Positions 4,236-62,002 of a stretch of DNA of 64,000 nucleotides are shown here, piece by piece. Origin of the DNA: Isurus oxyrinchus (lineage: Eukaryota); contig JANJGN010000031.1 in NCBI GenBank assembly GCA_026770705.1, forward strand, positions 1,488,001 through 1,552,000, given 5' to 3'. The notes beneath the pieces are model-generated. The model was given only the letters and a program-made list of their open reading frames with translations, was not told the origin of the DNA and did no database searches. Position numbers and translations under genes: made by a program. Positions within the stretch are counted from its first letter, which is position 1; every line of letters starts with the position of its first letter.

Positions 4236-4985
4236 TGGGAGTTGTTGGAGTTACATAGACTTGGTCTCTATTCCCTTGAGTATAATACATTTAGTGGTTA
4301 GTTAATTGAGCATTAGAAAAATGTTAAAATGGGTTTATATATTTGAGAAAGGGAAACAGTTCCCTGTGGTAGCTGAATCCAGACAAGATGGCAAAGTATT
4401 GAAATTCAGGCTAGGTATATTCAGATGTCCTGTTCTATTCCTTCGCATGACCAATGTGCTTATTGGAGTTACGGGTGAAATTGAGCTTTCAAGAGAAACA
4501 TATGGAACAAAGACAGTTAGATACAGTTAAGACATATTTGAACCATGGTCTAATTGAATGGCTCTACAGTTTCTGTGTAAAAGGCTCGAGAGACGTTTAA
4601 ACGGCCTCTTCCTGCAGCTATATAACTGGTCTGTTTAGGGGCAATTGACCTCCTCCTGCTGAAAAGTCGAATGAGCTAAATTGGATTCCGTTGTGCCACT
4701 TCAAACAATTTCAGTCGTCTGTTTCGTGGCCCTAGAGAGTCCTCTACTGTATTTGTGGAGAAATGCAACACAGCTTCAGTATATCGATTGAGAACAAATT
4801 CACTCCTCTCTATCGTTCTTCCTTTGTTTATTACATTCTCTCTTTCCTTCCTTTCTTTCGATATTCCCGATGTAACTTTTGTCTCTTCTTCTTGTCAAAA
4901 ACACATTCATTCTGCAAAATGAAATCAAGTTTTTTTGGGGACAGCGCATGATTTCCTCATTCACAGTTGTTTCCTGCCGCCTTTG

Positions 4986-5024
4986 GGCTTTTGTTGAGCT
5001 GCTCCATTTCTGTGAGTCACTGTG
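4986..5024 (-). other. 23-RSS of V-A1
   Basis: CACAGTG (5024-5018), 23-nt spacer, ACAAAAGCC (4994-4986). Confidence 0.95.
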
Positions 5025-5528
5025 AAGACTCCAGGCGCAGTAATACACGGCCGAGTGATCCGCCTGCAGGTTGGGGGTCTCCAGTTTGAATTCAGGGTCA
5101 CTCGGTCTCCGGGCAGTGAAACCGTCCACCGGGTCCCTCGGAACTAACTTGGTTGATAGCAGCTGAGTAAAACATTATTTGGGGCTCTCTCCCCGGGTAT
5201 TGTCTGTACCAGTTAATAGCAGGGTTAGTGCTGCCCTCCACATCGCAATTCAGTTCCACTGCCTGCCCGGGAAATTTGGAGACAGCGGCGGGAGTCTGGC
5301 GGATCGTCTGCGAGTTCACGTCTGGAGAAGAGGCAGGAAGAGGAGGAGGCCAGAACCGGAGAAATTCTGGAGATGGAGAAGGAAAGTGGGAAAGAAAGGA
5401 AGGAAGGAAGGGGGGAGGAGAGGAATAATGAAGGAAAGGAAATATAAAGGATTGTTGTTTAAACGGTTATTGCATAAAAAACATCACTTACATTGAAATA
5501 AGATCAGCAATCTCAAAACCACATATAT
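5025..5528 (-). pseudogene. TRBV: TCR beta V pseudogene A1 (TRBV30-like)
   Basis: Leader 5528-5492 with start codon mutated to ATA; GT/AG intron; V exon 5321-5025 is 297 nt with a +1 frameshift at ~5130 (GGACCCGGTG vs GGGCCGGTG). Cys, WYRQ and YYCAWS are present. Confidence 0.9.
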
Positions 5529-6775: not shown

Positions 6776-7713
6776 CATTTCCCTCGCCCTTTCTCTCTCT
6801 CTCTTTTTTCTGTTGTTCTTCCTTCTCTAACCTTCCCTCTCCCTTTCTATCCTTATTTCCCTCTTTCCTTTCTTTTTTTCACATTACTTAGTTGAATCTA
6901 TTTATTTCTCCCTCATGTATTTGTTTAGTTTCTCCTCAAGCACATCCCTGCTGCAACCACATTCTCACCACCCACTGGATTTATTTCTCCTGGATTCCCA
7001 GTTAATTGTATTACTGATGACGTCTTCTAATCGTTTTGATCTTCCTAGAAAGTGGAAACATGTTTGCGTTATCTTTCCTATCAAACAACTTTCACAATTT
7101 CAAATACCTCTATCATGAAAATATCTCAATCTTCTTGCTCGAATAGAAATGCATATTCCAATTCTTTGCTTTTAACTATAGTCTCTCAGTTCTGGTAACC
7201 TCCTCCTTAATTTTCCTTTTCACTTTCTACAGTCCTTCACAATATAATCAGTCACTTTCATTGTAGTCTTTTCTCTTATTGTCAAAAACCATATTAGCTC
7301 TGCAAGAAGAACAAAACACAACAGGTCCAGCCACCGCGCAGTGTTACCATTCGCAGCTGTTTCCTGCCGCCTTTGCATGAATTAGTTTGTTCCAAACTCC
7401 TGATTCGTTTTTGTAACTTATTCTCATCTTCCCCACCTCAATTCTAATAAATCCCTTCATCATTTCAATAAAACTTCTTGACAACTGCTCTCAACATCTA
7501 TTTTCCAACAAAAACGAACAAATTCAGAATATGCTGATGCTTGACCCACTCATATCTGGGAACTCTCTTCTCCAGTGCTTCCCAAACTAATCACTCACTT
7601 TTATTCTCGCTGTTCTCTTAGTGTCAAAAGGTCTTTGCCCCGAGAGAAAAAGAAACAGGGAGTCGAAGCGCCCGGTGATGTTGTTTCGGGCAGCTGTTTC
7701 CTGCCGCCTTTGG

Positions 7714-7752
7714 GGTTTTTGTTGAGCTGCTCCATCTCTCTGAGTCACTGTG
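7714..7752 (-). other. 23-RSS of V-B1 (consensus)
   Basis: CACAGTG (7752-7746), 23-nt spacer, ACAAAAACC (7722-7714). Confidence 0.97.
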
Positions 7753-8276
7753 AAGACTCCAGGCGCAGTAATACACGGCCGAGTGATTCCCCCGCAGGCT
7801 GGGGGACTCCAGCATGAACTTGGAGCCACTCGGTCTCTGGGCCTTGAAACCGTCCACCCGCCCCTCTGAACTCACTTGATTGGTGCCTGTGGAGTAAAAC
7901 ATCAGCTGCGGCTCCCTCCCCGGGTACTGTCTGTACCAGAACATGTAAAGGTTACTGCTCGCCTCTACAGTGCACTCCAGTTCCACTTTATCCCCGGAAT
8001 ATCTGGAGACAGCAGCGGGAGTCTGGCGGATAGTCTGTGAGTTCACATCTGGGGAACAGAAGGAGAGCGGAAGCCGTCAGTAAAGGGGGTTAATTGGGTG
8101 TTGGGGAAACAAAGAAAGATAAGAGATAAACGTAGAGAAATAGAAAGAAACACCAGAAGGAGAGAGAGCAAGGGAAGGTCAGCAAGTGGAGCGGAAAGCT
8201 CGAGGCTGAGCTGGAATTGTTGTCTGGAAAGTTCCTTACAGTGAAACATGATTAACGGCGGCAGCAACAGATACAT
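7753..8276 (-). CDS. TRBV: TCR beta V gene segment B1, apparently functional (TRBV30-like); exons 8276-8240 and 8048-7753
   Basis: Leader MYLLLPPLIMFH, phase-1 GT/AG intron, then open V exon (Y)VNSQTIRQTP...LECTVEASSNLYMFWYRQ...YYCAWSL directly followed by the RSS. Confidence 0.92.
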
Positions 8277-8942: not shown

Positions 8943-10330
8943 AGATACTGTTCTTCATGGGGGAAGAGAGAACTCGGAGCAGTTTCAAAAAAGGGGGTCG
9001 CCCGTTTAAGAGGGAGATGAGGAACAATCTCTTTGAGAGTCGTGAATGTTTGCAATTCTGTACCTCAAAGAGCAGTGGAGGATGGGTCAATGAATATATT
9101 CAAGGCTGAGCAAAAGTTTTGAATTATTCGGGAAATAGGAGATAATGAATGCGGGAAGGCTGCAGACAAAGTGGATAAGGCTGCAATGAGATTTGCCATG
9201 ATCTCATTGAATGGCAGAGCAGGCTCGTGGGGCCGAATGGCCTACTCCTGCTCTTCTTTCTTATGTCCTTACGTTATGACCGGCTAACTTGCTCCTATAT
9301 CAGTAACTACTTTCGATATTCCCGGGATAGCTTTCACTCTGACCAGCCTTGTATTCCCTGGAATGTAGAAGTTCGAAGAGTGAGCAAATCAAGGCGTTAA
9401 TGATTAAAGGATTTGATAAAGCAGATGGAGAGAAAGCATTTGGCTGGGGAAGGGTCCACCACACCGGCGCAGTACAATCAAATTCGACCCAGGCCGGTGG
9501 AAATCTTGAGCTCGGTCCCCTGCAAACAGCTGTGGAGCCTGGGGATCAACTGTAACCTTCAACAGCCGAATTAATCGAAAACAGAAAATGGTGGGAAAAC
9601 GCAGGTCAGGCAGCATCTGTGGGGAGAGAAACAGATTTAACGTTTCGAGTCCGTCTAACACTTCCTCAGACCGGAAATGATAGATTTTTGTAATGTTGGG
9701 AGAACGAAAATACAGAGCGCAGGCGGGTAAATGGAGCGAAGAAACAGAGCAGCCACGATTCCATTGAATGAATGAACAGTTTCGCGGTGAGGAATCGCCT
9801 CCTCCGCCGACTCGAATGGCCGAATGGTCTCCCGATATTCCTGTGTAAAAACTTCATTAAGCTCGATGGGCCTCCTCCTGTTCCTGTCTAATAGTTTCGA
9901 GAGGGGGCTGAAATGACCTCCTCCTTTACGTATGTAACAAATCCAAAGGGACAGAATGGGGACGTATGTAACAAAACCAAAGGGACAGAATGGGGCTTCC
10001 GTATGTTGCCGTGCTGAATGGACGCCTTCTGTAACTTGGTTTCCTTTAAAACATTGTCCGGCGCTGGTCTCCTTGATGGTCTTTGTCCGTCCCCTGCTGC
10101 TCCAAGGAGAACGCGCAGTTAGTGAATAAATTTCAATTATTTTTGCTGCAGTCACAAACTCCTAATTCTGGTACAATATTGTTAATTAAACTCCAGTGTT
10201 TTTACATCCATTCCCTCACTTTCATAGTAACCGGTTTCCTCTTATTGCCATAAACACGTTATTCAGCAAACGTGAAACAGGGGGCAACCGCCTGGTTCTC
10301 TCATTTACAGCTGTTTCCTGCCGCCTTTCG

Positions 10331-10369
10331 GGTTGCTGTTGAGCTGCTCCATCTCTCTGAGTCACTGTG
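10331..10369 (-). other. 23-RSS of V-C1 (weaker nonamer)
   Basis: CACAGTG (10369-10363), 23-nt spacer, ACAGCAACC. Confidence 0.9.
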
Positions 10370-10657
10370 AAGACTCCAGGCGCAGTAATACACGGCCGCG
10401 TGATCCACCGGGCGACTCCAACTTGAACTCCGAGTCTCTCGATCTCCGAGCGCTGAAACCGCCCACCGGCCCCTCTGGATTTACAATATTGGTGCCTCAG
10501 GAGTCAAACATCAGCTGCAGCTCTTTCCCCGGGTCCTGTCTGTACCAGAACATGACACCGCTACTGGCTCCATCCGCAGTGCAATTCAATTCCACTCTCC
10601 CTCCAAGAAATTTGGAAATAGTTCGGGGAATCTGATGGACTGTCGCCGATTTCGCGG
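10370..10657 (-). pseudogene. TRBV: TCR beta V pseudogene C1 (V exon only; leader and promoter deleted)
   Basis: AKSATVHQIP...LNCTADG...WYRQDPGKELQLMFDS then TGA (AGA>TGA); 8-nt deletion in FR3 (288-nt exon); leader removed by the deletion at 10769/10770. Confidence 0.9.
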
Positions 10658-11451
10658 CTGAGAAACAAAACGGGAGAGAAGGACGTAAATAAACAGGGAC
10701 ATTCTCATGGAGAAGCAGGGAATGAAAGAGAAAACATGAGAGAAGGATGGAAGAAAATAAATGATAAACTGATGTGTTTCATGGTCCTAGAGCGTCCTCT
10801 GCAGTTCGAGTTGGGAAAGAAATCGCAGAGTCAGTGTATTAAAGCCCAGCCTTTTCTGTGCTTCCTTAACGCTGTTTCCCTTCCCTTTTGTAATTTATCT
10901 TTTATTTTTATTTGCTATTTAATTTGCCGCACTCACAGCTAAATTCACAGTGAAAACCAGCCTCGTCCGCTGACTGTGCTCAAAACTTCAGCCCAGAGTG
11001 GGTTATTCATTTATTCACTTATTCATTTCTCATTCGTGTTTATCCAGTTTCCGCTTCAGGGCATCGATAATATTCCCCTCAAACACTCGGTGGTGGCGAC
11101 TTCCACACGCTTTGCTTGAATTAGATTGTTCCAAATTCCTAATTCGATTTTGTAACTGATTCGCATCTTCTCCACCTGAATCCTACTGAACCGCTTCATT
11201 GTTTCAATAAAACTTCATGAGAATTGCTCTCAACCTCCATTTTCCAGCAAAAACAAACAAATTTAGACTTTGCTGATGGTTTCACCACTCATAGCTGGAA
11301 ACTCCCTGCTCCAGTGCTTCACAATCTATTCACTCATTTTATTGTAACTGTTCTGTTATTGTCAAAAGGTCTTTGTCCCGAGAGAAAAAGAAACAGCGAG
11401 TCGAAGCGCCTCGTAATGTTGTCTCGAGCAGCTGTTTCCTGCCGCCTTTGG

Positions 11452-13011: not shown

Positions 13012-14385
13012 TTAATAAAACCATGGCTGATCTAATTTTCACCTCAACTTCAAATTCCTGCCTACTCCTGCTAACCTTTCACCTCCTTAATATCAAGAAT
13101 CTCTCTACTTCCGCCTTAATGATATTCAAAGACTCTCCCTCAAACACCTTTTGCAGAAAAGAATTCCAAACCCTCACAACACTCTGAGAGAGAGAAAAAT
13201 ATCCTCACCACTGCCTGAAATAGGCAATGCCTAATTTTTAAACAGTGCCCCTTAGTTTGAGATTCTCCCACAAGAAGAAACATCCTCTCCACAACCACCT
13301 TGTCAAGACCCCTCAGGATCTTATATGTTTCAATCAAGTCGCCTCTTCCCTTCTAAACTCCAGTGGATACAAGCCTAGTCTGTCCAACCTTTCCTTATAA
13401 GACAACTCGCCCATTCCAGTATTAATCTAGGAAAACTTCTCTGAACCGCTTCCAATGCATTTCCATCCTTCCTTAAATACTGCACACAGTACAGGAGATG
13501 TGGTCTCACCAATGCCCTAAATAACTGAAGCATAACTTCCCTATCCTTGTTTTCAACTCCCATCACAAAAAACAATAACATTCTCTTAGCTTTCCCAATT
13601 ACTTGCTGTACCTGCATTCTAACCTTTTGGGATTCAAGCACTTGGGCACCCAGAAATCTCTACATCTCAGAGCTCTGCAATCTCTCACCATTTATATAAT
13701 ATGCTTCTTTTTATGTCCTGCCAAAATGGCAACTTCACATTTTCTCACATTAATACTGTATTTGCCAGGTCTTTACCCACTCATTTAACTCATCTATATC
13801 CGTTTGTAACCTTCTTATGTCCTCTTCACAATTTACTTACCTACCTATCTTTGGATCAACAGCAAATTTAACAACAATATCATCATTCCCTTCATGTTAA
13901 TTATTTGTATAAATTGTGAAGTGTTGAGGCCCCAGCATTGACACCTGTAGCACATCACTCGCCACATCCCAGCAACCAGAAAAAGACATATTTATGCCTA
14001 CTCTCTGTTTCCTGTTAGCTAGTCAATCTGCTATCCATGCCAATATGTAATGTCAAATACCACGTGCTCTTATTGTCAGTAATAATCTTTGATGTGGCAC
14101 TTTATCAAATGCTTTCTGGAACTCTAAATGTAGTACATCCACCAGTTCGCCTTTATTAACAGTACCTTTTCCTGTTTCAAAGAACTCCAATGAATTGGTT
14201 AAATATCATTTCCCTTTCTCAAAACCATGTTGACTCTGCCTGATGACCTTGAATTTACCTAAGTGTCCTGTTATAGCATCTTTGAGAACCACTTATGTCA
14301 TTTTCCCTTTGACAGGTGTAAAGCTCACTGCCCTATAGATTCCTGCTCTCTGTCTCCCTTCCTTTTCAATAAAGCAGTTATATCA
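13012..14385 (-). mobile_element. CR1-type LINE RT/3' fragment; copies at ~36055-37482 and ~58693-60119
   Basis: LFRALVRPHL.YCVQ...LEAVQR and LIETYKILRGLDKV...MF.LVGES.T.GH.LKI are CR1 ORF2 C-terminal motifs. The 3' tail (aggagcaggagtaggcc) survives in units 2 and 3 only. Confidence 0.85.
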
Positions 14386-14649
14386 GGTTTTTTTGCAATC
14401 AGAACTAGGCTGTTGAGTTATGATATCAAGAAGCATTTATTCACACAAACAAATCTGTAACACTTGCCCCAATGATCACTGGATGACTTGGAGGGTCATT
14501 TGAAGATTTAAGACCGAAATTGATAGTTTTTTGTTGGGTAAATGTATGAATGGTGACAAGGCAGATAATTGAAATTAAGATACAGAACAGCTGGAATCTA
14601 ATTGAATTGTCTGGCAGGTACGAAAGACTCCCGATTTTTCTTGAGTTCT

Positions 14650-15030: not shown

Positions 15031-16271
15031 TGAGTTTCGATTCCTGTTAAACCAACATGTCAGGCACCAGGGTCTGGCAACAGCTTCGATCGCCTCCTGC
15101 TGTCCACTTGGAGAAAGAAACCCGGTGCCTGGAAACACTGGACGTTATATTGTTCTCTTTGTCTCTTTATTTCTTTCTTCATTTGTCAAAGCCTTTCTCT
15201 TACTTGCTGTTTCATTATTTTCTGCGTCACTTCTTTCTTCCTGTCTTTAGTTTCATTTATTTCTCTATTCTGACTCTTACATTTTTTTAAACCCTGAAAC
15301 AGGACGATGAGACTGGGCATGGCCTATGACGTGTTTATTACTTTCTCTGCTCCTGTCTACCTATCCTTCTTATTTTCATTTTTTCATTCGCCCTTTCCTC
15401 GGGTTGGCTACTTTATTTTCTATTTTCCATTTTTCAACCTTTTGTAATGACCACAGAGTTTGTAAACACATGCCTGCTGCAGATCGAAAGCCCATCTCTG
15501 TGACTCCCGGTCCGCCCTTTATTTACCCGCCAATAAGAACAGCGTAAAAATGCTGAAAGAAGCAAGAAGCCAGAGTCCATCTCCCCCTCCCCACGGTTCC
15601 CATGTCTGTCCCTACTCAGGGGTCAGTTCACTAACTCCACTGATTAATCCCATAAAGACATTTTACTGCCCCTCACTGTACCAACATGGACTGTATCACA
15701 CAGAAACAGACCAGTCAATCCAACAGCCTCGTGCTACTGTTTAAAGAGCGGCTTTAATCCTCTCCTCCCATGCAAACTGATTTCAACCCTTCAACACACC
15801 CTTCATCATTCATCTGTTTATCCAGCTTCCCCTGAAATCCATCTCTGCTCTTCGCCCCATGGTTCCAGAATCTCGCCTCTCTGGGAAAATTAGGTTTCTC
15901 CTGAAAGCCCGATGGGATATATTGTATTATTAATCATCTCATATTGATGACCCCTAGTTCTGGTCACGCCTGCAAGTGAAAATATCTCCTGTCCATCTCC
16001 TTGTTGAACCGCCTTCCATCATGTTAAATTCCTCTATCAGGATAGCAGCCATTCTGGTGGAAACAGCTCCAGTCTCTTCCGTCTTTCCCGATAGTAACAG
16101 CCGCTCAGTTGCTTGTAAATTTGTCTGTGCACCTTTTCCACAGCTTCTATACCTGACATTCAACCCAACTGATCTCTTGTTCTTCCCAAAACTGCCTTCA
16201 CTTTGGTAAAAAGAAACAAGAGGCAGCATCGCCTGGTTTCCTCATTCACAGCTGTTTCCTGCCGCCTTTGG

Positions 16272-26100: not shown

Positions 26101-26284
26101 ACTCCTCTCTATCGTTCTTCCTTTGTTTATTACATTCTCTCTTTCCTTCCTTTCTTTCGATATTCCCGATGTACCTTTTGTCTCTTCTTCTTGTCAAAAA
26201 CACATTCATTCTGCAAAATGAAATCAAGTTTTTTTGGGGACAGCGCATGATTTCCTCATTCACAGTTGTTTCCTGCCGCCTTTG

Positions 26285-26827: not shown

Positions 26828-29021
26828 GTTGACCGGTAAAATTTTCCTATAATAGGGAAATGAGCTGAACCAAGGGCGTTGGGCATTGTTGGGAACCGAC
26901 CTGCTTGTTTAAAATCATTGATGAAAACATGAAGAGCTTAAGGAAGTGATTTAGGTGTAAAAAGCCAAGCCCCGCCCCCTCTGATTGAAAGCCCCGCCCT
27001 CATTATTGGGTGGAACAGGACGTTTCAAAGCGGACAGAGTGGGAAAAGAAGCGGCAGATGCATTTTGATGTGACCCATTCTCAGGACATCCAGGGTCGAC
27101 CTAAGAAAGAGGGAGCAGGATACTTTCTAACTGGCGGAAGCGAAGGACTCTGGAGCTGCAAAGGAATTTAGTTGTCTCGCTGAACAAGGAAGAATCATAC
27201 AGTCCAATCGAATTTTTACTTGAAGGGAACTAGAAGGCGAAACGGAGGAAGTTCTGGCTCATTGTAAGGAACTCAGAACAAACCCCTCCGACAATCCTTC
27301 TTTCCATTCGGGGCAGTCACATCAGGAAGGATGAATTGGACCTGGAGGGTGTTCAACGCTGATGCAACAGAATTATACCTTGGTTTAAGGGGTTAAATCA
27401 TGAGGACAGGTTGCATAATCTTGTCTGCCTGACCTTCAGCATGAAAGACCCACGGGAATATTTGAGGTTCTTTCATGAGTTTCAGAAGCAGTTATCACAG
27501 GCTATAGGTACCTTGTTTTCTAGATTCCCACACCAGGAAAAATAGTATAACTTCACAGTTAGAGACATGTCTTTCAGGGTGATGTGAGGAAATATTTCCT
27601 CTGACAAATGGTTGTAGAAATCTGGAACTGTCTCCCAGCAAAAGATTAATGGGGGGGGGAGGGGGGGGGGCGTTAACCTTACATTTCAAAACTGAGATTG
27701 ATGGACTTTTTGGGGGACAGTGTGCTGAGAAATATGGACTGGAGGTGGACAGTTGGAGGTAAAATGTAGTCCTGACGCGGTCATGGTAACCATTAACATT
27801 AACACTCCCTTTTTCCTTTAGCTCATGACATCTTTGTCAATCTCTCATTTGCCTCCACCTATCGCTGGCTTTGTATCCAGATCGACCTGCCCACCCCCCT
27901 TAAACAGTATAAATTTCAACATATTTCCACTTCTCTTCAACTCTGAATAAGGGTCATACGGACTCAAAGCGTTAACACCTTCTCTCTCCACAGATGCTGC
28001 TAGGCCTGCTGTGTTCTTTCAACATTTTCTGGGTTTTTGTTTTCAGATTTCTGGCATCTGCACTATTTTGCTTTTATTTTAGTCATTTCCCTCGCCCTTT
28101 CTCTCTCTCTCTTTTTTCTGTTGTTCTTCCTTCTCTAACCTTCCCTCTCCCTTTCTATCCTTATTTCCCTCTTTCCTTTCTTTTTTTCACATTACTTAGT
28201 TGAATCTATTTATTTCTCCCTCATGTATTTGTTTAGTTTCTCCTCAAGCACATCCCTGCTGCAACCACATTCTCACCACCCACTGGATTTATTTCTCCTG
28301 GATTCCCAGTTAATTGTATTACTGATGACGTCTTCTAATCGTTTTGATCTTCCTAGAAAGTGGAAACATGTTTGCGTTATCTTTCCTATCAAACAACTTT
28401 CACAATTTCAAATACCTCTATCATGAAAATATCTCAATCTTCTTGCTCGAATAGAAATGCATATTCCAATTCTTTGCTTTTAACTATAGTCTCTCAGTTC
28501 TGGTAACCTCCTCCTTAATTTTCCTTTTCACTTTCTACAGTCCTTCACAATATAATCAGTCACTTTCATTGTAGTCTTTTCTCTTATTGTCAAAAACCAT
28601 ATTAGCTCTGCAAGAAGAACAAAACACAACAGGTCCAGCCACCGCGCAGTGTTACCATTCGCAGCTGTTTCCTGCCGCCTTTGCATGAATTAGTTTGTTC
28701 CAAACTCCTGATTCGTTTTTGTAACTTATTCTCATCTTCCCCACCTCAATTCTAATAAATCCCTTCATCATTTCAATAAAACTTCTTGACAACTGCTCTC
28801 AACATCTATTTTCCAACAAAAACGAACAAATTCAGAATATGCTGATGCTTGACCCACTCATATCTGGGAACTCTCTTCTCCAGTGCTTCCCAAACTAATC
28901 ACTCACTTTTATTCTCGCTGTTCTCTTATTGTCAAAAGGTCTTTGCCCCGAGAGAAAAAGAAACAGCGAGTCGAAGCGCCCGGTAATGTTGTTTCGGGCA
29001 GCTGTTTCCTGCCGCCTTTGG

Positions 29022-29584: not shown

Positions 29585-31634
29585 CTTCCACTTCAGGTTC
29601 CCTTTGAACCAATCTTTATCACTGGTAAGAAAACACTAGAAATAAAATGCTCCTCCTCCTCACTCTGATTGGCAGCCCAACCCCTCCCATTCAGACTAAC
29701 AGCCCCGCCTTTTCCCGTTTCAGCCCCGCCTCTCTCTCCCTGATTGGATTATGTGGAGCTGCGGGCAGCAGGAAGGTGCGCACATGGGGGTGTTAGTGGA
29801 CAGGGCAAAACTCGAGGGGTCACAACTCAGATTCATCAGGACAATACCGGAGTTTAGAGGGGTAAATTAAGAAGACAGGCTGCAGCAACCTTGCTGCATT
29901 CCCTGAATTTAGAATAGTGAGGGGTGACTTAATTCAACTGCTCAAACTGGAAAAGCAAAATTGAGGGTATTTGATAGAAACTTTTCTCTCTGCTGGGAGG
30001 ACTGTCCAGAAGAGTAGAATAACCTTAAAATTAGAGTTCGGAATGAGAGGTGAGCTTATTGATACATAGAAGATTCGGAGGTTGGCTTGAAAAGGCAGAT
30101 ACTGTTCTAGTTCTGTCGAAGGGTCATGAGGGTCAACTCTTTTCTTCTCCGCCGATGCTGCCAGACCTGCTGAGTTTTTCCAGGTAATTCTGTCTTTGTT
30201 TTGGATTTCCAGCATCCGCAGTTTTCTTTGTTTTTATTTTTAGATACTGTTCTTCATGGGGGAAGAGAGAACTCGGAGCAGTTTCAAAAAAGGGGGTCGC
30301 CCGTTTAAGAGGGAGATGAGGAACAATCTCTTTGAGAGTCGTGAATGTTTGCAATTCTGTACCTCAAAGAGCAGTGGAGGATGGGTCAATGAATATATTC
30401 AAGGCTGAGCAAAAGTTTTGAATTATTCGGGAAATAGGAGATAATGAATGCGGGAAGGCTGCAGACAAAGTGGATAAGGCTGCAATGAGATTTGCCATGA
30501 TCTCATTGAATGGCAGAGCAGGCTCGTGGGGCCGAATGGCCTACTCCTGCTTTTCTTTCTTATGTCCTTAAGTTATGACCGGCTAACTTGCTCCTATATC
30601 AGTAACTACTTTCGATATTCCCGGGATAGTTTTCACTCTGACCAGCCTTGTATTCCCTGGAATGTAGAAGTTCGAAGAGTGAGCAAATCAAGGCGTTAAT
30701 GATTAAAGGATTTGATAAAGCAGATGGAGAGAAAGCATTTCCATTGCCTGGGGAAGGGTCCACCACACCGGCGCAGTACAATCAAATTCGACCCAGGCCG
30801 GTGGAAATCTTGAGCTCGGTCCCCTGCAAACAGCTGTGGAGCCTGGGGATCAACTGTAACCTTCAACAGCCGAATTAATCGAAAACAGAAAATGGTGGGA
30901 AAACGCAGGTCAGGCAGCATCTGTGGGGAGAGAAACAGATTTAACGTTTCGAGTCCGTCTAACACTTCCTCAGACCGGAAATGATAGATTTTTGTAATGT
31001 TGGGAGAACGAAAATACAGAGCGCAGGCGGGTAAATGGAGCTAAGAAACAGAGCAGCCACGATTCCATTGAATGAATGAACAGTTTCGCGGTGAGGAATC
31101 GCCTCCTCCGCCGACTCGAATGGCCGAATGGTCTCCCGATATTCCTGTGTAAAAACTTCATTAAGCTCGATGGGCCTCCTCCTGTTCCTGTCTAATAGTT
31201 TCGAGAGGGGGCTGAAATGACCTCCTCCTTTACGTATGTAACAAATCCAAAGGGACAGAATGGGGACGTATGTAACAAAACCAAAGGGACAGAATGGGGC
31301 TTCCGTATGTTGCCGTGCTGAATGGACGCCTTCTGTAACTTTGTTTCCTTTAAAACATTGTCCGGCGCTGGTCTCCTTGATGGTCTTTGTCCGTCCCCTG
31401 CTGCTCCAAGGAGAACGCGCACTTAGTGAATAAATTTCAATTATTTTTGCTGCAGTCACAAACTCCTAATTCTGGTACAATATTGTTAATTAAACTCCAG
31501 TGTTTTTACATCCATTCCCTCACTTTCATAGTAACCGGTTTCCTCTTATTGCCATAAACACGTTATTCAGCAAACGTGAAACTGGGGGCAACCGCCTGGT
31601 TCTCTCATTTACAGCTGTTTCCTGCCGCCTTTAG

Positions 31635-33270: not shown

Positions 33271-34230
33271 AGCCTAGGCCTTATTAGAGGCGTGCGGTAA
33301 GGAAGAACTGATTAAACAACGGATAGTGAAAACCTGCAACATTCTCCCCAAAATACAGTCAATGTTGGTGGTCAATTTCAAAATTGAGGTTGATAGATTT
33401 TGTTCGGTCAGTGTTTCAAGGGATGAGTAGTGGAGGTAGGTAGATGGAATGAACGGTACAGATCAGCTATAATGCTATAGTGGAACAGGCTCGAAGGGCT
33501 GTCTCGCCTCCATCTGTTTCTGTTCCAATTTCACCATGTTCCAGGCACTGATGTGTTTCATGGTCCTAGAGCGTCCTCTGCAGTTCGAGTTGGGAAAGAA
33601 ATCGCAGAGTCAGTGTATTAAAGCCCAGCCTTTTCTGTGCTTCCTTAACGCTGTTTCCCTTCCCTTTTGTAATTTATCTTTTATTTTTATTTGCTATTTA
33701 ATTTGCCGCACTCACAGCTAAATTCACAGTGAAAACCAGCCTCGTCCGCTGACTGTGCTCAAAACTTCAGCCCAGAGTGGGTTATTCATTTATTCACTTA
33801 TTCATTTCTCATTCGTGTTTATCCAGTTTCCGCTTCAGGGCATCGATAATATTCCCCTCAAACACTCGGTGGTGGCGACTTCCACATGCTTTGCTTGAAT
33901 TAGATTGTTCCAAATTCCTAATTCGATTTTGTAACTGATTCTCATCTTCTCCACCTGAATCCTACTGAACCGCTTCATCGTTTCAATAAAACTTCATGAG
34001 AATTGCTCTCAACCTCCATTTTCCAGCAAAAACAAACAAATTTAGACTTTGCTGATGGTTTCACCACTCATAGCTGGCAACTCCCTGCTCCAGTGCTTCA
34101 CAATCTATTCATTCATTTTATTGTAACTGTTCTCTTATTGTCAAAAGGTCTTTGTCCCGAGAGAAAAAGAAACAGCGAGTCGAAGCGCCTCGTAATGTTG
34201 TCTCGAGCAGCTGTTTCCTGCCGCCTTTGG

Positions 34231-38800: not shown

Positions 38801-39365
38801 CAGACCAGTCAATCCAACAGCCTCGTGCTACTGTTTAAAGAGCGGCTTTAATCCTCTCCTCCCATGCAAACTGATTTCAACCCTTCAACACACCCTTCAT
38901 CATTCATCTGTTTATCCAGCTTCCCCTGAAATCCATCTCTGCTCTTCGCCCCATGGTTCCAGAATCTCGCCTCTCTGGGAAAATTAGGTTTCTCCTGAAA
39001 GCCCGATGGGATATATTGTATTATTAATCATCTCATATTGATGACCCCTAGTTCTGGTCACGCCTGCAAGTGAAAATATCTCCTGTCCATCTCCTTGTTG
39101 AACCGCCTTCCATCATGTTAAATTCCTCTATCAGGATAGCAGCCATTCTGGTGGAAACAGCTCCAGTCTCTTCCGTCTTTCCCGATAGTAACAGCCGCTC
39201 AGTTGCTTGTAAATTTGTCTGTGCACCTTTTCCACAGCTTCTATGCCTGACATTCAACCCAACTGATCTCGTGTTCTTCCCAAAACTGCCTTCACTTTGG
39301 TAAAGAGAAACAAGAGGCGGCATCGCCTGGTCTCCTCATTCACAGCTGTTTCCTGCCGCCTTTGG

Positions 39366-48700: not shown

Positions 48701-48922
48701 TGCAACACAGCTTCAGTATATCGATTGAGAACAAATTCGCTCCTCTCTATCGTTCTTCCATTGTTTATTACATTCTCTCTTTCCTTCCTTTCTTTCGATA
48801 TTCCCGATGTACCTTTTGTCTCTTCTTCTTGTCAAAAACACATTCATTCTGCAAAATGAAATCAAGTTTTTTTGGGGACAGCGCATGATTTCCTCATTCA
48901 CAGTTGTTTCCTGCCGCCTTTG

Positions 48923-49465: not shown

Positions 49466-51659
49466 GTTGACCGGTAAAATTTTCCTATAATAGGGAAATG
49501 AGCTGAACCAAGGGCGTTGGGCATTGTTGGGAACCGACCTGCTTGTTTAAAATCATTGATGAAAACATGAAGAGCTTAAGGAAGTGAGTTAGGTGTAAAA
49601 AGCCAAGCCCCGCCCCCTCTGATTGAAAGCCCCGCCCTCATTATTGGGTGGAACAGGACGTTTCAAAGCGGACAGAGTGGGAAAAGAAGCGGCAGATGCA
49701 TTTTGATGTGACCCATTCTCAGGACATCCAGGGTCGACCTAAGAAAGAGGGAGCAGGATACTTTCTAACTGGCGGAAGCGAAGGACTCTGGAGCTGCAAA
49801 GGAATTTAGTTGTCTCGCTGAACAAGGAAGAATCATACAGTCCAATCGAATTTTTACTTGAAGGGAACTAGAAGGCGAAACGGAGGAAGTTCTGGCTCAT
49901 TGTAAGGAACTCAGAACAAACCCCTCCGACAATCCTTCTTTCCATTCGGGGCAGTCACATCAGGAAGGATGAATTGGACCTGGAGGGTGTTCAACGCTGA
50001 TGCAACAGAATTATATCTTGGTTTAAGGGGTTAAATCATGAGGACAGGTTGCATAATCTTGTCTGCCTGACCTTCAGCATGAAAGACCCACGGGAACATT
50101 TGAGGTTCTTTCATGAGTTTCAGAAGCAGTTATCACAGGCTATAGGTACCTTGTTTTCTAGATTCCCACACCAGGAAAAATAGTATAACTTCACAGTTAG
50201 AGACATGTCTTTCAGGGTGATGTGAGGAAATATTTCCTCTGACAAATGGTTGTAGAAATCTGGAACTGTCTCCCAGCAAAAGATTAATGGGGGGGGGGAG
50301 GGGGGGTGCGTTAACCTTACATTTCAAAACTGAGATTGATGGACTTTTTGGGGGACAGTGTGCTGAGAAATATGGACTGGAGGTGGACAGTTGGAGGTAA
50401 AATGTAGTCCTGACGCGGTCATGGTAACCATTAACATTAACACTCCCTTTTTCCTTTAGCTCATGACATCTTTGTCAATCTCTCATTTGCCTCCACCTAT
50501 CGCTGGCTTTGTATCCAGATCGACCTGCCCACCCCCCTTAAACAGTATAAATTTCAACATATTTCTACTTCTCTTCAACTCTGAATAAGGGTCATACGGA
50601 CTCAAAGCGTTAACACCTTCTCTCTCCACAGATGCTGCTAGGCCTGCTGTGTTCTTTCAACATTTTCTGGGTTTTTGTTTTCAGATTTCTGGCATCTGCA
50701 CTATTTTGCTTTTATTTTAGTCATTTCCCTCGCCCTTTCTCTCTCTCTCTTTTTTCTGTTGTTCTTCCTTCTCTAACCTTCCCTCTCCCTTTCTATCCTT
50801 ATTTCCCTCTTTCCTTTCTTTTTTTCACATTACTTAGTTGAATCTATTTATTTCTCCCTCATGTATTTGTTTAGTTTCTCCTCAAGCACATCCCTGCTGC
50901 AACCACATTCTCACCACCCACTGGATTTATTTCTCCTGGATTCCCAGTTAATTGTATTACTGATGACGTCTTCTAATCGTTTTGATCTTCCTAGAAAGTG
51001 GAAACATGTTTGCGTTATCTTTCCTATCAAACAACTTTCACAATTTCAAATACCTCTATCATGAAAATATCTCAATCTTCTTGCTCGAATAGAAATGCAT
51101 ATTCCAATTCTTTGCTTTTAACTATAGTCTCTCAGTTCTGGTAACCTCCTCCTTAATTTTCCTTTTCACTTTCTACAGTCCTTCACAATATAATCAGTCA
51201 CTTTCATTGTAGTCTTTTCTCTTATTGTCAAAAACCATATTAGCTCTGCAAGAAGAACAAAACACAACAGGTCCAGCCACCGCGCAGTGTTACCATTCGC
51301 AGCTGTTTCCTGCCGCCTTTGCATGAATTAGTTTGTTCCAAACTCCTGATTCGTTTTTGTAACTTATTCTCATCTTCCCCACCTCAATTCTAATAAATCC
51401 CTTCATCATTTCAATAAAACTTCTTGACAACTGCTCTCAACATCTATTTTCCAACAAAAACGAACAAATTCAGAATATGCTGATGCTTGACCCACTCATA
51501 TCTGGGAACTCTCTTCTCCAGTGCTTCCCAAACTAATCACTCACTTTTATTCTCGCTGTTCTCTTATTGTCAAAAGGTCTTTGCCCCGAGAGAAAAAGAA
51601 ACAGGGAGTCGAAGCGCCCGGTAATGTTGTTTCGAGCAGCTGTTTCCTGCCGCCTTTGG

Positions 51660-52222: not shown

Positions 52223-54272
52223 CTTCCACTTCAGGTTCCCTTTGAACCAATCTTTATCACTGGTAAGAAAACACTAGAAATAAAATGCTCCACCTCCTCA
52301 CTCTGATTGGCAGCCCAACCCCTCCCATTCAGACTAACAGCCCCGCCTTTTCCCGTTTCAGCCCCGCCTCTCTCTCCCTGATTGGATTATGTGGAGCTGC
52401 GGGCAGCAGGAAGGTGCGCACATGGGGGTGTTAGTGGACAGGGCAAAACTCGAGGGGTCACAACTCAGATTCATCAGGACAATACCGGAGTTTAGAGGGG
52501 TAAATTAAGAAGACAGGCTGCAGCAACCTTGCTGCATTCCCTGAATTTAGAATAGTGAGGGGTGACTTAATTCAACTGCTCAAACTGGAAAAGCAAAATT
52601 GAGGGTATTTGATAGAAACTTTTCTCTCTGCTGGGAGGACTGTCCAAAAGAGTAGAATAACCTTAAAATTAGAGTTCGGAATGAGAGGTGAGCTTATTGA
52701 TACATAGAAGATTCGGAGGTTGGCTTGAAAAGGCAGATACTGTTCTAGTTCTGTCGAAGGGTCATGAGGGTCAACTCTTTTCTTCTCCGCCGATGCTGCC
52801 AGACCTGCTGAGTTTTTCCAGGTAATTCTGTCTTTGTTTTGGATTTCCAGCATCCGCAGTTTTCTTTGTTTTTATTTTTAGATACTGTTCTTCATGGGGG
52901 AAGAGAGAACTCGGAGCAGTTTCAAAAAAGGGGGTCGCCCGTTTAAGAGGGAGATGAGGAACAATCTCTTTGAGAGTCGTGAATGTTTGCAATTCTGTAC
53001 CTCAAAGAGCAGTGGAGGATGGGTCAATGAATATATTCAAGGCTGAGCAAAAGTTTTGAATTATTCAGGAAATAGGAGATAATGAATGCGGGAAGGCTGC
53101 AGACAAAGTGGATAAGGCTGCAATGAGATTTGCCATGATCTCATTGAATGGCAGAGCAGGCTCGTGGGGCCGAATGGCCTACTCCTGCTTTTCTTTCTTA
53201 TGTCCTTAAGTTATGACCGGCTAACTTGCTCCTATATCAGTAACTACTTTCGATATTCCCGGGATAGTTTTCACTCTGACCAGCCTTGTATTCCCTGGAA
53301 TGTAGAAGTTCGAAGAGTGAGCAAATCAAGGCGTTAATGATTAAAGGATTTGATAAAGCAGATGGAGAGAAAGCATTTCCATTGGCTGGGGAAGGGTCCA
53401 CCACACCGGCGCAGTACAATCAAATTCGACTCAGGCCGGTGGAAATCTTGAGCTCGGTCCCCTGCAAACAGCTGTGGAGCCTGGGGATCAACTGTAACCT
53501 TCAACAGCCGAATTAATCGAAAACAGAAAATGGTGGGAAAACGCAGGTCAGGCAGCATCTGTGGGGAGAGAAACAGATTTAACGTTTCGAGTCCGTCTAA
53601 CACTTCCTCAGACCGGAAATTATAGATTTTTGTAATGTTGGGAGAACGAAAATACAGAGCGCAGGCGGGTAAATGGAGCGAAGAAACAGAGCAGCCACGA
53701 TTCCATTGAATGAATGAACAGTTTCGCGGTGAGGAATCGCCTCCTCCGCCGACTCGAATGGCCGAATGGTCTCCCGATATTCCTGTGTAAAAACTTCATT
53801 AAGCTCGATGGGCCTCCTCCTGTTCCTGTCTAATAGTTTCGAGAGGGGGCTGAAATGACCTCCTCCTTTACGTATGTAACAAATCCAAAGGGACAGAATG
53901 GGGACGTATGTAAGAAAACCAAAGGGACAGAATGGGGCTTCCGTATGTTGCCGTGCTGAATGGACGCCTTCTGTAACTTTGTTTCCTTTAAAACATTGTC
54001 CGGCGCTGGTCTCCTTGATGGTCTTTGTCCGTCCCCTGCTGCTCCAAGGAGAACGCGCACTTAGTGAATAAATTTCAATTATTTTTGCTGCAGTCACAAA
54101 CTCCTAATTCTGGTACAATATTGTTAATTAAACTCCAGTGTTTTTACATCCATTCCCTCACTTTCATAGTAACCGGTTTCCTCTTATTGCCATAAACACG
54201 TTATTCAGCAAACGTGAAACTGGGGGCAACCGCCTGGTTCTCTCATTTACAGCTGTTTCCTGCCGCCTTTAG

Positions 54273-54789: not shown

Positions 54790-56868
54790 CTTTCACTTTA
54801 AGTTTGTCTTGTAATTGGGAAAGGAACGAAAACTGGAGAGGCCAGGCTTGATGGGAGTGAAACCGCCTCCTGTCAAATCAATGAAGGGAAGATGGAGGGC
54901 CCAGGGATGTGTGCATATAGCCCTCCCTCCATGGTGGAAAGACACGCCCTCTCCCTCAATAATTGGCTGTAAGTGGAGCTGATAAGAACAGCAGGTTTCA
55001 AAGGCCAGAGGGCGCGAGTGGGCAAAGCAGTCGCAGATGCAGTGGGTAATGTCAGAGGTCACAATTATCGGCCTAAGCGGGGAGAGCATAATATGTTCTA
55101 ACTGGCGAGAAGCGAAGAACTCTAGAGCTGCAAAGGAACTTAGTTATCCAGCATGAAAAATCTCAGATAGACAGAAAGAAAAATGAGTCACCAAGGTGAA
55201 TGGAATGCTAGCCTTTACTCAAGCGGAGCTGGAGTGCAGCATGGAGCCAGTTACACTCCAGTTGTTGAGAGCGCCGGGCGGACTCCATCGCGAGATTTAT
55301 TTCAGTTCTGGCCAGCTCACCTCAGGAGGGATGTATTAGTCTGAGAGGGGGCGGGGGACAAAGTGGATTGACCAGATTAATATTGGGCTCAAATCGTTAA
55401 ATCACGTGGACGGTTTCTCTGTATTCCCTTGAGTTTACAAGATTGAGGAATGTATTTGCGAGCCCCTTTTTGGACATTTTAGAAAGGTATCCCGCGTTAA
55501 TAAATAGGTGCTATTTCATCTAGTGTTCTTCTAGAACAATGAGGTGCAGTATGTTGCTTAGTGCTGGTGTTGGCATCATGGTGTTGTTACTGGTCTCGTA
55601 TTTCAGAGAGCCACGATTATTCTCTGGGGGCCCGGGTTCAGGTCCCACCACGGCAGGTGGCGAAATTTGAATCCAATCAAAATCTGAAATTGAAAGTCTG
55701 ATGACTATGAACCGATTGTCGTAAAAACCCATCTGGTTCCCTTTAGGGAAGAGAATGTGCCGTCCTTACCCTGGTCTGGTCTACATGTGACTCCACACCC
55801 ACACCCGCAGCAATGTGGTTCACTCTGAACGAGGGTAATGAGGGATGGCAAATAAATGCTGGCCTAGCCAGCGACGCCCACATCCCACGAACGAACCATT
55901 AAAAATAAAGCCTAGGCCTTATTAGAGGCGTGCGGTAAGGAAGAACTGATTAAACAACGGATAGTGAAAACCTGCAACATTCTCCCCAAAATACAGTCAA
56001 TGTTGGTGGTCAATTTCAAAATTGAGGTTGATAGATTTTGTTCGGTCAGTGTTTCAAGGGATGAGTAGTGGAGGTAGGTAGATGGAATGAACGGTACAGA
56101 TCAGCTATAATGCTATAGTGGAACAGGCTCGAAGGGCTGTCTCGCCTCCATCTGTTTCTGTTCCAATTTCACCATGTTCCAGGCACTGATGTGTTTCATG
56201 GTCCTAGAGCGTCCTCTGCAGTTCGAGTTGGGAAAGAAATCGCAGAGTCAGTGTATTAAAGCCCAGCCTTTTCTGTGCTTCCTTAACGCTGTTTCCCTTC
56301 CCTTTTGTAATTTATCTTTTATTTTTATTTGCTATTTAATTTGCCGCACTCACAGCTAAATTCACAGTGAAAACCAGCCTCGTCCGCTGACTGTGCTCAA
56401 AACTTCAGCCCAGAGTGGGTTATTCATTTATTCACTTATTCATTTCTCATTCGTGTTTATCCAGTTTCCGCTTCAGGGCATCGATAATATTCCCCTCAAA
56501 CACTCGGTGGTGGCGACTTCCACATGCTTTGCTTGAATTAGATTGTTCCAAATTCCTAATTCGATTTTGTAACTGATTCTCATCTTCTCCACCTGAATCC
56601 TACTGAACCGCTTCATCGTTTCAATAAAACTTCATGAGAATTGCTCTCAACCTCCATTTTCCAGCAAAAACAAACAAATTTAGACTTTGCTGATGGTTTC
56701 ACCACTCATAGCTGGCAACTCCCTGCTCCAGTGCTTCACAATCTATTCATTCATTTTATTGTAACTGTTCTCTTATTGTCAAAAGGTCTTTGTCCCGAGA
56801 GAAAAAGAAACAGCGAGTCGAAGCGCCTCGTAATGTTGTCTCGAGCAGCTGTTTCCTGCCGCCTTTGG

Positions 56869-60400: not shown

Positions 60401-62002
60401 CGACCCACAGCCTCCACCACAGGTGGGGCTAGGAAGCAGGCCACGAATTCACCCTATCCAGAATGGGGATCAAACCCCGTCGCTGTTAGCACCAAACTGA
60501 TCCACACTAGCCATCCAGCTACTTCAACATGTATGTTGGAGCCTGGAATCTCCGACATTCCAAAACATTGCTAACCAGGAATATCTCCCGCTCCCACTGC
60601 CTGCCATTTGCGTGTGTTGGAAGGACTTCTACGTTGACACTCAACCTGTTTGGCTGCATTACGAATGTACCTTCCACGGGCATCGAGCCCTATAGTGGGG
60701 GATGAAGATAGAGCTTCTGACTCAGAGGCAGGGTCACTACTCGCTGCGCCACAAGACCGCCTCCTGAGTTTCGATTCCTGTTAAACCAACATGTCAGGCA
60801 CCAGGGTCTGGCAACAGCTTCGATCGCCTCCTGCTGTCCACTTGGAGAAAGAAACCCGGTGCCTGGAAACACTGGACGTTATATTGTTCTCTTTGTCTCT
60901 TTATTTCTTTCTTCATTTGTCAAAGCCTTTCTCTTACTTGCTGTTTCATTATTTTCTGCGTCACTTCTTTCTTCCTGTCTTTAGTTTCATTTATTTCTCT
61001 ATTCTGACTCTTACATTTTTTTAAACCCTGAAACAGGACGATGAGACTGGGCATGGCCTATGACGTGTTTATTACTTTCTCTGCTCCTGTCTACCTATCC
61101 TTCTTATTTTCATTTTTTCATTCGCCCTTTCCTCGGGTTGGCCACTTTATTTTCTATTTTCCATTTTTCAACCTTTTGTAATGAACAGAGTTTGTAAACA
61201 CATTCCTGCTGCAGATCGAAAGCCCATCTATGTGACTCCCGGTCCGCCCTTTATTTACCCGCCAATAAGAACAGCGTAAAAATGCTGAAAGAAGCAAGAA
61301 GCCAGAGTCCATCTCCCCCTCCCCACGGTTCCCATGTCTGTCCCTACTCAGGGGTCAGTTCACTAACTCCACTGATTAATCCCATAAAGGCATTTTACTG
61401 CCCCTCACTGTACCAACCGGACTGTATCACACAGAAACAGACCAGTCAATCCAACAGCCTCGTGCTACTGTTTAAAGAGCGGCTTTAATCCTCTCCTCCC
61501 ATGCAAACTGATTTCAACCCTTCAACACACCCTTCACCATTCATCTGTTTATCCAGCTTCCCCTGAAATCCATCTCTGCTCTTCGCCCCATGGTTCCAGA
61601 ATCTCGCCTCTCTGGGAAAATTAGGTTTCTCCTGAAAGCCCGATGGGATATATTGTATTATTAATCATCTCATATTGATGACCCCTAGTTCTGGTCACGC
61701 CTGCAAGTGAAAATATCTCCTGTCCATCTCCTTGTTGAACCGCCTTCCATCATGTTAAATTCCTCTATCAGGATAGCAGCCATTCTGGTGGAAACAGTTC
61801 CAGTCTCTTCCGTCTTTCCCGATAGTACCAGCCGCTCAGTTGCTTGTAAATTTGTCTGTGCACCTTTTCCACAGCTTCTATGCCTGACATTCAACCCAAC
61901 TGATCTCGTGTTCTTCCCAAAACTGCCTTCACTTTGGTAAAGAGAAACAAGAGGCGGCATCGCCTTGTCTCCTCATTCACAGCTGTTTCCTGCCGCCTTT
62001 GG

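Follow-up and report, generated by a model that had tools for sequence, protein, structure and literature searches.

A conserved 21-bp block with an ETS:E-box composite adjoins the V recombination signals of a shark TCR-beta-type array and is a candidate docking site for DNA-binding proteins

In a 64,000-nucleotide stretch of the Isurus oxyrinchus genome (GenBank assembly GCA_026770705.1, contig JANJGN010000031.1, positions 1,488,001 to 1,552,000; hereafter the window), the variable (V) genes of a T-cell receptor (TCR) beta-type array are each followed by a nearly invariant 21-bp block, located 1 or 2 bp past the nonamer of a recombination signal sequence (RSS) with a 23-bp spacer (23-RSS). 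We propose that this block is a selectively maintained non-coding element that would serve as a docking site for sequence-specific DNA-binding proteins. Judging from its conservation, the block is probably under selection; that the whole chain holds, with an E-protein and an ETS factor docking at an RSS-fused site that sets local accessibility, is a possibility to which we give somewhat less than an even chance. What decides which V segments are recombined is a major unsolved question of the field. The local determinants known from mammals comprise RSS quality, promoters, CTCF sites by proximal VH RSSs, and occupancy of V-kappa RSSs by PU.1, E2A and IKAROS, and the cis basis of TCR-beta allelic exclusion is still debated.

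Results

Read in V orientation, which corresponds to the minus strand, the 21-mer AAAGGCGGCAGGAAACAGCTG has 18 matches in the window at up to three mismatches, 15 of them exact and three carrying a single mismatch that gives CAACTG in place of the CAGCTG E-box. Dinucleotide shuffles of the window contained no match in 100 of 100 cases, and a search with the distal 12-mer alone returned the same 18 places against 0.41 expected. Fifteen copies adjoin a V 23-RSS, with a linker of 2 bp after the nonamer (1 bp in the V lineage designated A), while the other three are exact copies without RSS or V gene, each 337 bp downstream of a lineage-B copy, and are referred to here as orphans. All 18 copies lie on the minus strand, a uniformity that is trivial because all V genes in the window share one orientation. 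One match to the 21-mer in a metagenome (contig L001) was rejected, as the contig looks by eye like G+C-rich bacterial coding DNA and lacks an RSS, and a single match was expected by chance.

The window (1-64000) is built from about three tandemly repeated units of about 22.6 kb, which are 98-100% identical to one another, and each unit holds five V lineages (A to E) that are 77-94% identical over aligned parts to the lineage-B gene of unit 1 (V-B1). Since the 15 V genes thus represent five lineages in three near-identical units, the independent sample within the window is five lineages and one orphan. In unit 1, the motif occupies 4964-4984 (lineage A, CAACTG variant, frame-broken V), 7691-7711 (lineage B), 10308-10328 (lineage C, frame-broken V), 11429-11449 (lineage D) and 16249-16269 (lineage E), with the orphan, whose downstream flank is homologous to the V flanks, at 7354-7374. 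The corresponding places are 26263-26283 (A, again CAACTG), 28999-29019 (B), 31612-31632 (C), 34208-34228 (D), 39343-39363 (E) and 28662-28682 (orphan) in unit 2, and 48901-48921 (A, CAACTG), 51637-51657 (B), 54250-54270 (C), 56846-56866 (D), 61980-62000 (E) and 51300-51320 (orphan) in unit 3. The original prediction had stated that all 15 genes carry the motif after the nonamer, that lineage A has CAACTG, which still fits CANNTG, and that similarity drops beyond the motif. The lineage-A variant and the drop (detailed below) were both borne out, and the motif is indeed present at 15 of 15 RSSs; the count of 15, however, has to be revised to 18 copies, three of them V-less, and to only five independent lineages.

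At V-B1, the 23-RSS (7714-7752, minus strand) is composed of the heptamer CACAGTG (7746-7752), the spacer (7723-7745) and the nonamer ACAAAAACC (7714-7722), after which a 2-bp linker that varies among lineages (7712-7713, minus strand) leads into the motif. A CACAGTG heptamer with a 23-bp spacer was found in 15 of 15 V signals. The nonamers differ by lineage, reading ACAAAAACC in B and D, ACAAAAGCC in A, ACAACAACC or ACAGCAACC in C, and ACAAAACAC in E. The string CACAGTGACTCA is also present in 15 of 15 V signals (at 7741-7752 in V-B1, for example), placing a perfect AP-1 heptamer, TGACTCA, across the junction of heptamer and spacer.

We aligned the five lineages of unit 2 and counted invariant columns per segment. 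The last 120 intron columns contained 19 invariant ones, and the V exon apart from its last 30 bases contained 154 of 267 (mean pairwise identity, 0.79). Conservation then rose to 26 of 30 in those last bases, which form the end of framework region 3 (FR3), 7 of 7 in the heptamer and 20 of 23 in the spacer, fell to 6 of 9 in the nonamer and 1 of 2 in the linker, and rose again to 20 of 21 in the motif (mean pairwise identity, 0.98). Immediately past the motif, only 5 of the next 21 columns were invariant (mean pairwise identity, 0.56), followed by 6 of 42 in columns 22-63, 11 of 42 in columns 64-105 and 13 of 195 in columns 106-300. The profile therefore has a plateau (FR3 end, heptamer and spacer), a dip (nonamer and linker), a second peak (motif) and a cliff. 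Among the 1095 possible windows of 21 columns, the motif alone reached 20 invariant columns; by hand arithmetic, the chance of at least 20 invariant columns in a given 21-mer at the V-exon rate of 0.58 is about 2e-4. With a discrete peak and a cliff at the distal end of the motif, the profile lacks the smooth decay from the exon expected of a conversion tract, which the original prediction had named as the pattern that would speak against it. The less conserved nonamer and linker between conserved spacer and motif further argue against a single homogenised tract, which would also erase the differences there. Comparison between units yielded no differences at 378 compared motif positions, against 10 of 630 in RSS and linker, 45 of 4470 in the V exon and 28 of 1800 in the next 100 bp, lending weak support because the pairs are not independent.

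We then consider other organisms, for which the 100-bp block 7691-7790 was probed by eight sampled words in public sequencing runs. Words of the block were found in 20 run rows from 11 studies and 12 organism codes, with a word share of 8 of 8 in the likely source, 0.75 in five other codes, 0.63 in one and 0.25-0.38 in five. Contigs of four runs (organisms B, D, E and G) were aligned to 7400-7900 at a likeness of at least 80%. Organisms B and E covered all 30 bins, and one organism-B contig differed at 2 of 320 positions, indicating that organism B is the same or a very close species. In organisms D and G, by contrast with this full coverage, depth at that likeness was zero in every bin of 7400-7688 and nil past 7875, in runs with contigs of up to 18.4 and 16.8 kb, respectively. 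Their contig pieces start at 7690/7691 (for example, X8 record 25 and X14 records 9-12) and run through the RSS into FR3. Loose ends at 7690/7691 numbered nine in organism D (X8) and seven in organism G (X14), and the flanks beyond them were mutually unlike (agreement, 0.54-0.61). None of the 40 differences listed falls in 7691-7711, and the sole listed one between 7677 and 7788 is a spacer change at 7726. One organism-B contig has CAGTTG in place of CAGCTG, which keeps CANNTG, as does the CAACTG of lineage A. Homogenisation within one genome cannot equalise species, and the cliff falls at the same base beside an unalignable flank, which together make the strongest argument for purifying selection. 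Absence of the motif from other species, a second pattern raised beforehand as unfavourable, was not seen, the block being present in contigs under other organism labels. This cross-species case comes from one contig-alignment summary and is limited by a summed depth in the distal-motif bin of about 40-60% of that in the next bin.

The orphans offer a comparison without a V gene. The orphan motif is identical at 21 of 21 positions. Its downstream flank shows identities of 0.55-0.65 with those of the five V lineages, the range also found among the V-lineage flanks themselves, except for B versus D (0.88). A permissive alignment hinted at likeness to a spacer and nonamer, as in a decayed RSS relic; under stricter scoring 157 of 2000 shuffles did as well, and we therefore call the orphan a copy with a homologous downstream flank and do not claim an RSS relic. 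Lineage D has a place homologous to the orphan, in which the sequence departs after the first four letters of the motif. That the motif is perfect here, with diverged DNA beside it and no RSS, suggests either that the motif itself is constrained or that a very short patch was copied.

The distal 12 nt of the motif, AGGAAACAGCTG (7691-7702 in lineage B of unit 1, with the E-box at 7691-7696), consist of a GGAA core, one base and a CAGCTG E-box, exact in 15 of the 18 copies and matching at 11 of 12 positions in the three lineage-A copies. A motif named 'ETS_Ebox' presumably belongs to the HOMER library, where we take it to derive from a data set of chromatin immunoprecipitation followed by sequencing (ChIP-seq) for SCL. 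The string AGGAAACAGCTG is printed under this name as a test motif in PMC5295818, with significant enhancer activity as a 3x repeat in mouse and human cells, in agreement with the original prediction that the ETS:E-box composite is a described motif. The shark block is identical to it at 12 of 12 positions in those 15 copies. It differs from the motif of that paper, which concerns mouse endothelial, blood and muscle enhancers, in lying beside recombination signals and in having nine further invariant nucleotides (PMC5295818). Reading the proximal part as a TCF/LEF site (CAAAG) was rejected, because the base before AAAG varies (C, T or G) among lineages. Apparent likeness to YY1 and E2F sites involves core mismatches and was not adopted.

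Discussion

The block is situated on the signal side of the RSS, and deletional V-to-DJ joining strips signal-side DNA from the V in use, so any selected function would act on the unrearranged segment, before or during recombination, in line with the argument made for the VH CTCF sites. In the mechanism that we propose, the distal 12 nt AGGAAACAGCTG would be bound by an ETS factor together with an E-protein dimer (a basic helix-loop-helix protein of the E2A/HEB type), and the proximal AAAGGCGGC by a further factor. The likeliest function would be to open or mark the chromatin immediately at the RSS, giving RAG access to that V, and V-beta accessibility may in this way be coupled to E-protein and ETS activity in thymocytes.

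Two bodies of work in mouse offer precedents. In pre-B cells, the presence of PU.1, an ETS factor, at V-kappa RSSs predicts recombination of the V-kappa gene, and E2A at the RSS correlates with its frequency (Matheson et al. 2017, PMC5698286). The PU.1, E2A and IKAROS occupancy described there involves the same factor classes and the same priming logic as we suggest for the shark block; the mouse Igk evidence consists of ChIP-seq peaks, whereas the shark element is sequence-defined and position-fixed and is known from sequence alone. As far as the available text of PMC5698286 goes, no fixed-position composite motif is defined. At mouse Tcrb, germline transcription and acetylation of V-beta segments are driven by E2A in a dose-dependent manner, and the loss of E2A that follows pre-TCR signalling is the basis of allelic exclusion (PMC9134016). 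The resemblance lies in E-boxes being tied to V-beta, with E-protein dose controlling germline transcription, acetylation and V-to-DJ joining (PMC9134016). A literature search whose scope excluded subscription journals and supplements turned up no paper on a post-nonamer ETS/E-box element of TCR V genes or on any RSS-adjacent element of shark TCR loci.

Several points weigh against this proposal. The ETS:E-box does not account for the proximal 9 nt, which are no less invariant than the rest, and the CAACTG of lineage A is a poor E-protein site. The factor assignments derive solely from motif likeness. The end of FR3, the RSS and the motif are conserved together over about 100 bp, silent sites included, so that conservation of the motif is not fully separable from that of the RSS block. 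The block is retained in the frame-broken lineages A and C, as conversion from intact neighbours predicts but a simple model in which it is needed for use of that V does not. With five lineages and one orphan, the window offers a small sample. In the other organisms, 65 further difference rows exist beyond the 40 listed, and individual contigs depart from the block at 7-9 of 69-78 positions, so that the motif may vary in some copies of those species. The motif is absent from a few contigs: the alignment of X8 record 28 begins only at 7713, and there is one loose end at 7706 in X3 and three at 7739 in X12. Finally, the E-boxes of mouse Tcrb are in V-beta promoters, E-beta and D-beta2 promoters, unlike the RSS-fused motif of the shark (PMC9134016).

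These points bear most directly on the reading in which the block is functionless and its conservation passive, the 3' end of the V gene (FR3 end, RSS and a little flank) having been homogenised by gene conversion or unequal exchange, or simply being young duplicated DNA. We consider this unlikely, though it is the foremost of the alternatives. In its favour, three units that are about 99% identical reduce the 15 copies to five in effect, and the FR3 end, RSS and motif are nearly perfect in lineages A and C despite their broken frames. A hint of patch exchange comes from the base before the heptamer, which in both B and C is T in unit 1 (7753 and 10370) and G in units 2 and 3 (29061 and 31674 in unit 2); this parallel change in neighbouring paralogs suggests short patch exchange. 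In lineage C, the copy of unit 1 (C1) has one nonamer position and one linker position that differ from those of units 2 and 3. What passive conservation leaves unaccounted for, besides the dip in the profile, is a cliff at the same base in five lineages, the orphan and the contigs of other organisms, other organism codes in which the same words occur and contigs align up to 7690/7691 while the flank and most of the V exon are less than 80% alike, and an orphan that matches at 21 of 21 positions with no alignable RSS beside it. The block might instead extend the recombination signal itself, through contact with RAG1/RAG2 or HMGB1 or through the bend of the 23-RSS, tuning cleavage or partner choice, for instance in a restriction of the beyond-12/23 type. 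To our knowledge, RAG-RSS structures have established no specific contacts past the nonamer, which counts against such an extension. The fusion of the motif to the nonamer at a fixed 1-2 bp, its conservation together with an unusually invariant 23-bp spacer (20 of 23 columns), and the strong bending of the 23-RSS by RAG and HMGB1, recorded with fluorophores flanking the nonamer (PMC3575807), would all fit. Yet the orphan keeps the motif without a heptamer or recognisable RSS, conservation within the window is lower in the nonamer, where RAG1 actually makes contact, than in the motif, and some RSSs in the contigs of other organisms are without the motif, making this the least probable of the readings considered.

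RSS-associated CTCF-binding elements of VH genes were reportedly described by Jain et al. 2018. The remaining alternative is that the block is a divergent CTCF-binding element, the TCR-beta counterpart of such sites at mouse and human VH genes, acting as a loop-extrusion anchor. We scored it against the 14-nt consensus strings quoted in PMC6746451, without a weight matrix, and with the limit of at most two mismatches used in that paper. The best 14-mer, CCCAAAGGCGGCAG, starts 3 nt before the 21-bp motif, within the last base or bases of the nonamer and the linker, and contains GGNGGCAG, the 3' half of the H19-type consensus (PMC6746451). Across the five lineages, it has three mismatches to the H19 type, four to the FII and genome-wide types and five to six to the VH types (mVH and hVH), which exceeds the limit of two; copy C1 alone comes down to two, against the H19 type. 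The CC of the 5' half sits in the variable nonamer and linker and is missing at the orphan (4-7 mismatches) despite a perfect 21-mer there, and the invariant block runs 12 nt past the CTCF-like core, which CTCF does not explain. All copies share one orientation, and RSS-associated CTCF sites are conserved like the RSS and more than the DNA between site and RSS (PMC6746451). In mouse Tcrb, moreover, 18 CTCF sites lie among V-beta segments, and the Trbv1 site promotes recombination of that gene (PMC10772921). The shark motif resembles the VH CTCF elements of Ciccone et al. 2019 (PMC6746451) in lying on the signal side at a fixed distance and in one orientation, in RSS-like conservation and in being lost on rearrangement, and it shares with them the feature of being better conserved than its surroundings (20 of 21 versus 5 of 21 columns) with uniform orientation (18 of 18). 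It departs from them in its 3-6 mismatches, in a position 1-2 bp from the nonamer rather than the 17-19 bp of mouse VH sites, in belonging to a shark TCR-beta-type locus and not Igh, and in its ETS:E-box sequence (PMC6746451). With this number of mismatches and the wrong nonamer distance, the CTCF component of the original prediction was not supported, and we regard a CTCF element as improbable, less so than an extension of the RSS and more so than passive conservation.

The docking site proposed here, bound by an E-protein and an ETS factor, would have wider implications if it were ancient and shark-wide. Fused to V-beta nonamers, it would hard-wire RAG access to E-protein dose, and RSS-coupled docking modules, each locus with its own factor, would then be ancestral to antigen-receptor loci and not a mammalian Igh speciality; we put this forward tentatively, as a conjecture with perhaps one chance in several. 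If true, ordered rearrangement and feedback inhibition (allelic exclusion) would have a basis in cis at the level of the oldest living jawed vertebrates. The element gives a concrete, mutable handle on whether RSS-coupled factor docking is ancestral, and it lets direct action of E-protein dose at V-beta RSSs be tested, which is relevant to TCR-beta allelic exclusion. Were the block mere hitch-hiking, it would still show exactly where the conserved V unit ends in such arrays.

Other features of the window

The V exon of V-B1 (7753-8048, minus strand) is open over 98 full codons, ends in ...SAVYYCAWSL and is of the V-set type (Pfam V-set, E 2.6e-12). A putative 37-nt leader exon was placed by eye at 8240-8276 on the same strand, with its ATG at 8276-8274 and a GT donor after 8240. 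Compared with natural single chains in the PDB, the V exon matched TCR beta chains best (E about 1e-19 to 1e-20), with antibody constructs containing a light-chain V domain (VL) scoring similarly. As a protein query, taken alone without the leader, its nearest matches among five proteins in all were two Chiloscyllium punctatum V domains at 60 and 66% identity. The 64-kb window contains no D, J or C segment.

Start-to-start spacings of the units range from 21.3 to 23.1 kb, reflecting unit-specific indels, and the distance from the C to the D motif is about 1.5 kb less in unit 1; the three-unit array is either a very recent triplication or an assembly issue. V exons are open in lineages B and D only. 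In lineage A (4985-5332 and copies), the open stretch in the YYC frame is just 150 nt. Lineage C (10329-10693 and copies) shows a gap of 8 columns in FR3, and its longest open stretch up to the heptamer is 132 nt. Lineage E has, by eye, AT where the other lineages have the AG splice acceptor. From their sequences, only lineages B and D look usable, and at least two of the five lineages look like pseudogenes.

About 12 bp past each orphan motif, we noted CTGCGCGGTGGCTG (7328-7341, 28636-28649 and 51274-51287, minus strand), which has two mismatches to the H19-type CTCF consensus. Post-motif flanks in contigs of organisms D and G share the letters AACACTGC, which neighbour CTGCGCGGTGGCTG. The latter may be what is left of a CTCF-type site that once lay behind an earlier form of the unit.

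A second, looser shared element, a 17-mer near TTTTGACAATAAGAGAA, lies 54-66 bp past the motif in lineages A, B, C and D and at the orphan, and is looser still in lineage E. It occupies 15 such places at 0-3 mismatches, of 18 matches in all against 0.43 expected. Its copy at V-B1 is at 7613-7629 (minus strand), 61 bp after the motif, and the other places in unit 1 are 7271-7287, 4884-4900, 10237-10253 and 11351-11367, with copies in units 2 and 3. The element begins like an inverted nonamer, and AATAAA follows it in B and D. The three other matches, at 14065, 37162 and 59799, fall by eye in DNA resembling the reverse transcriptase of long interspersed nuclear elements (LINEs) and were taken as chance. 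The region around 14000-14400 (minus strand) resembles, by eye only, a LINE reverse transcriptase fragment, with a motif of the ...FQKAFDKVPH... type.

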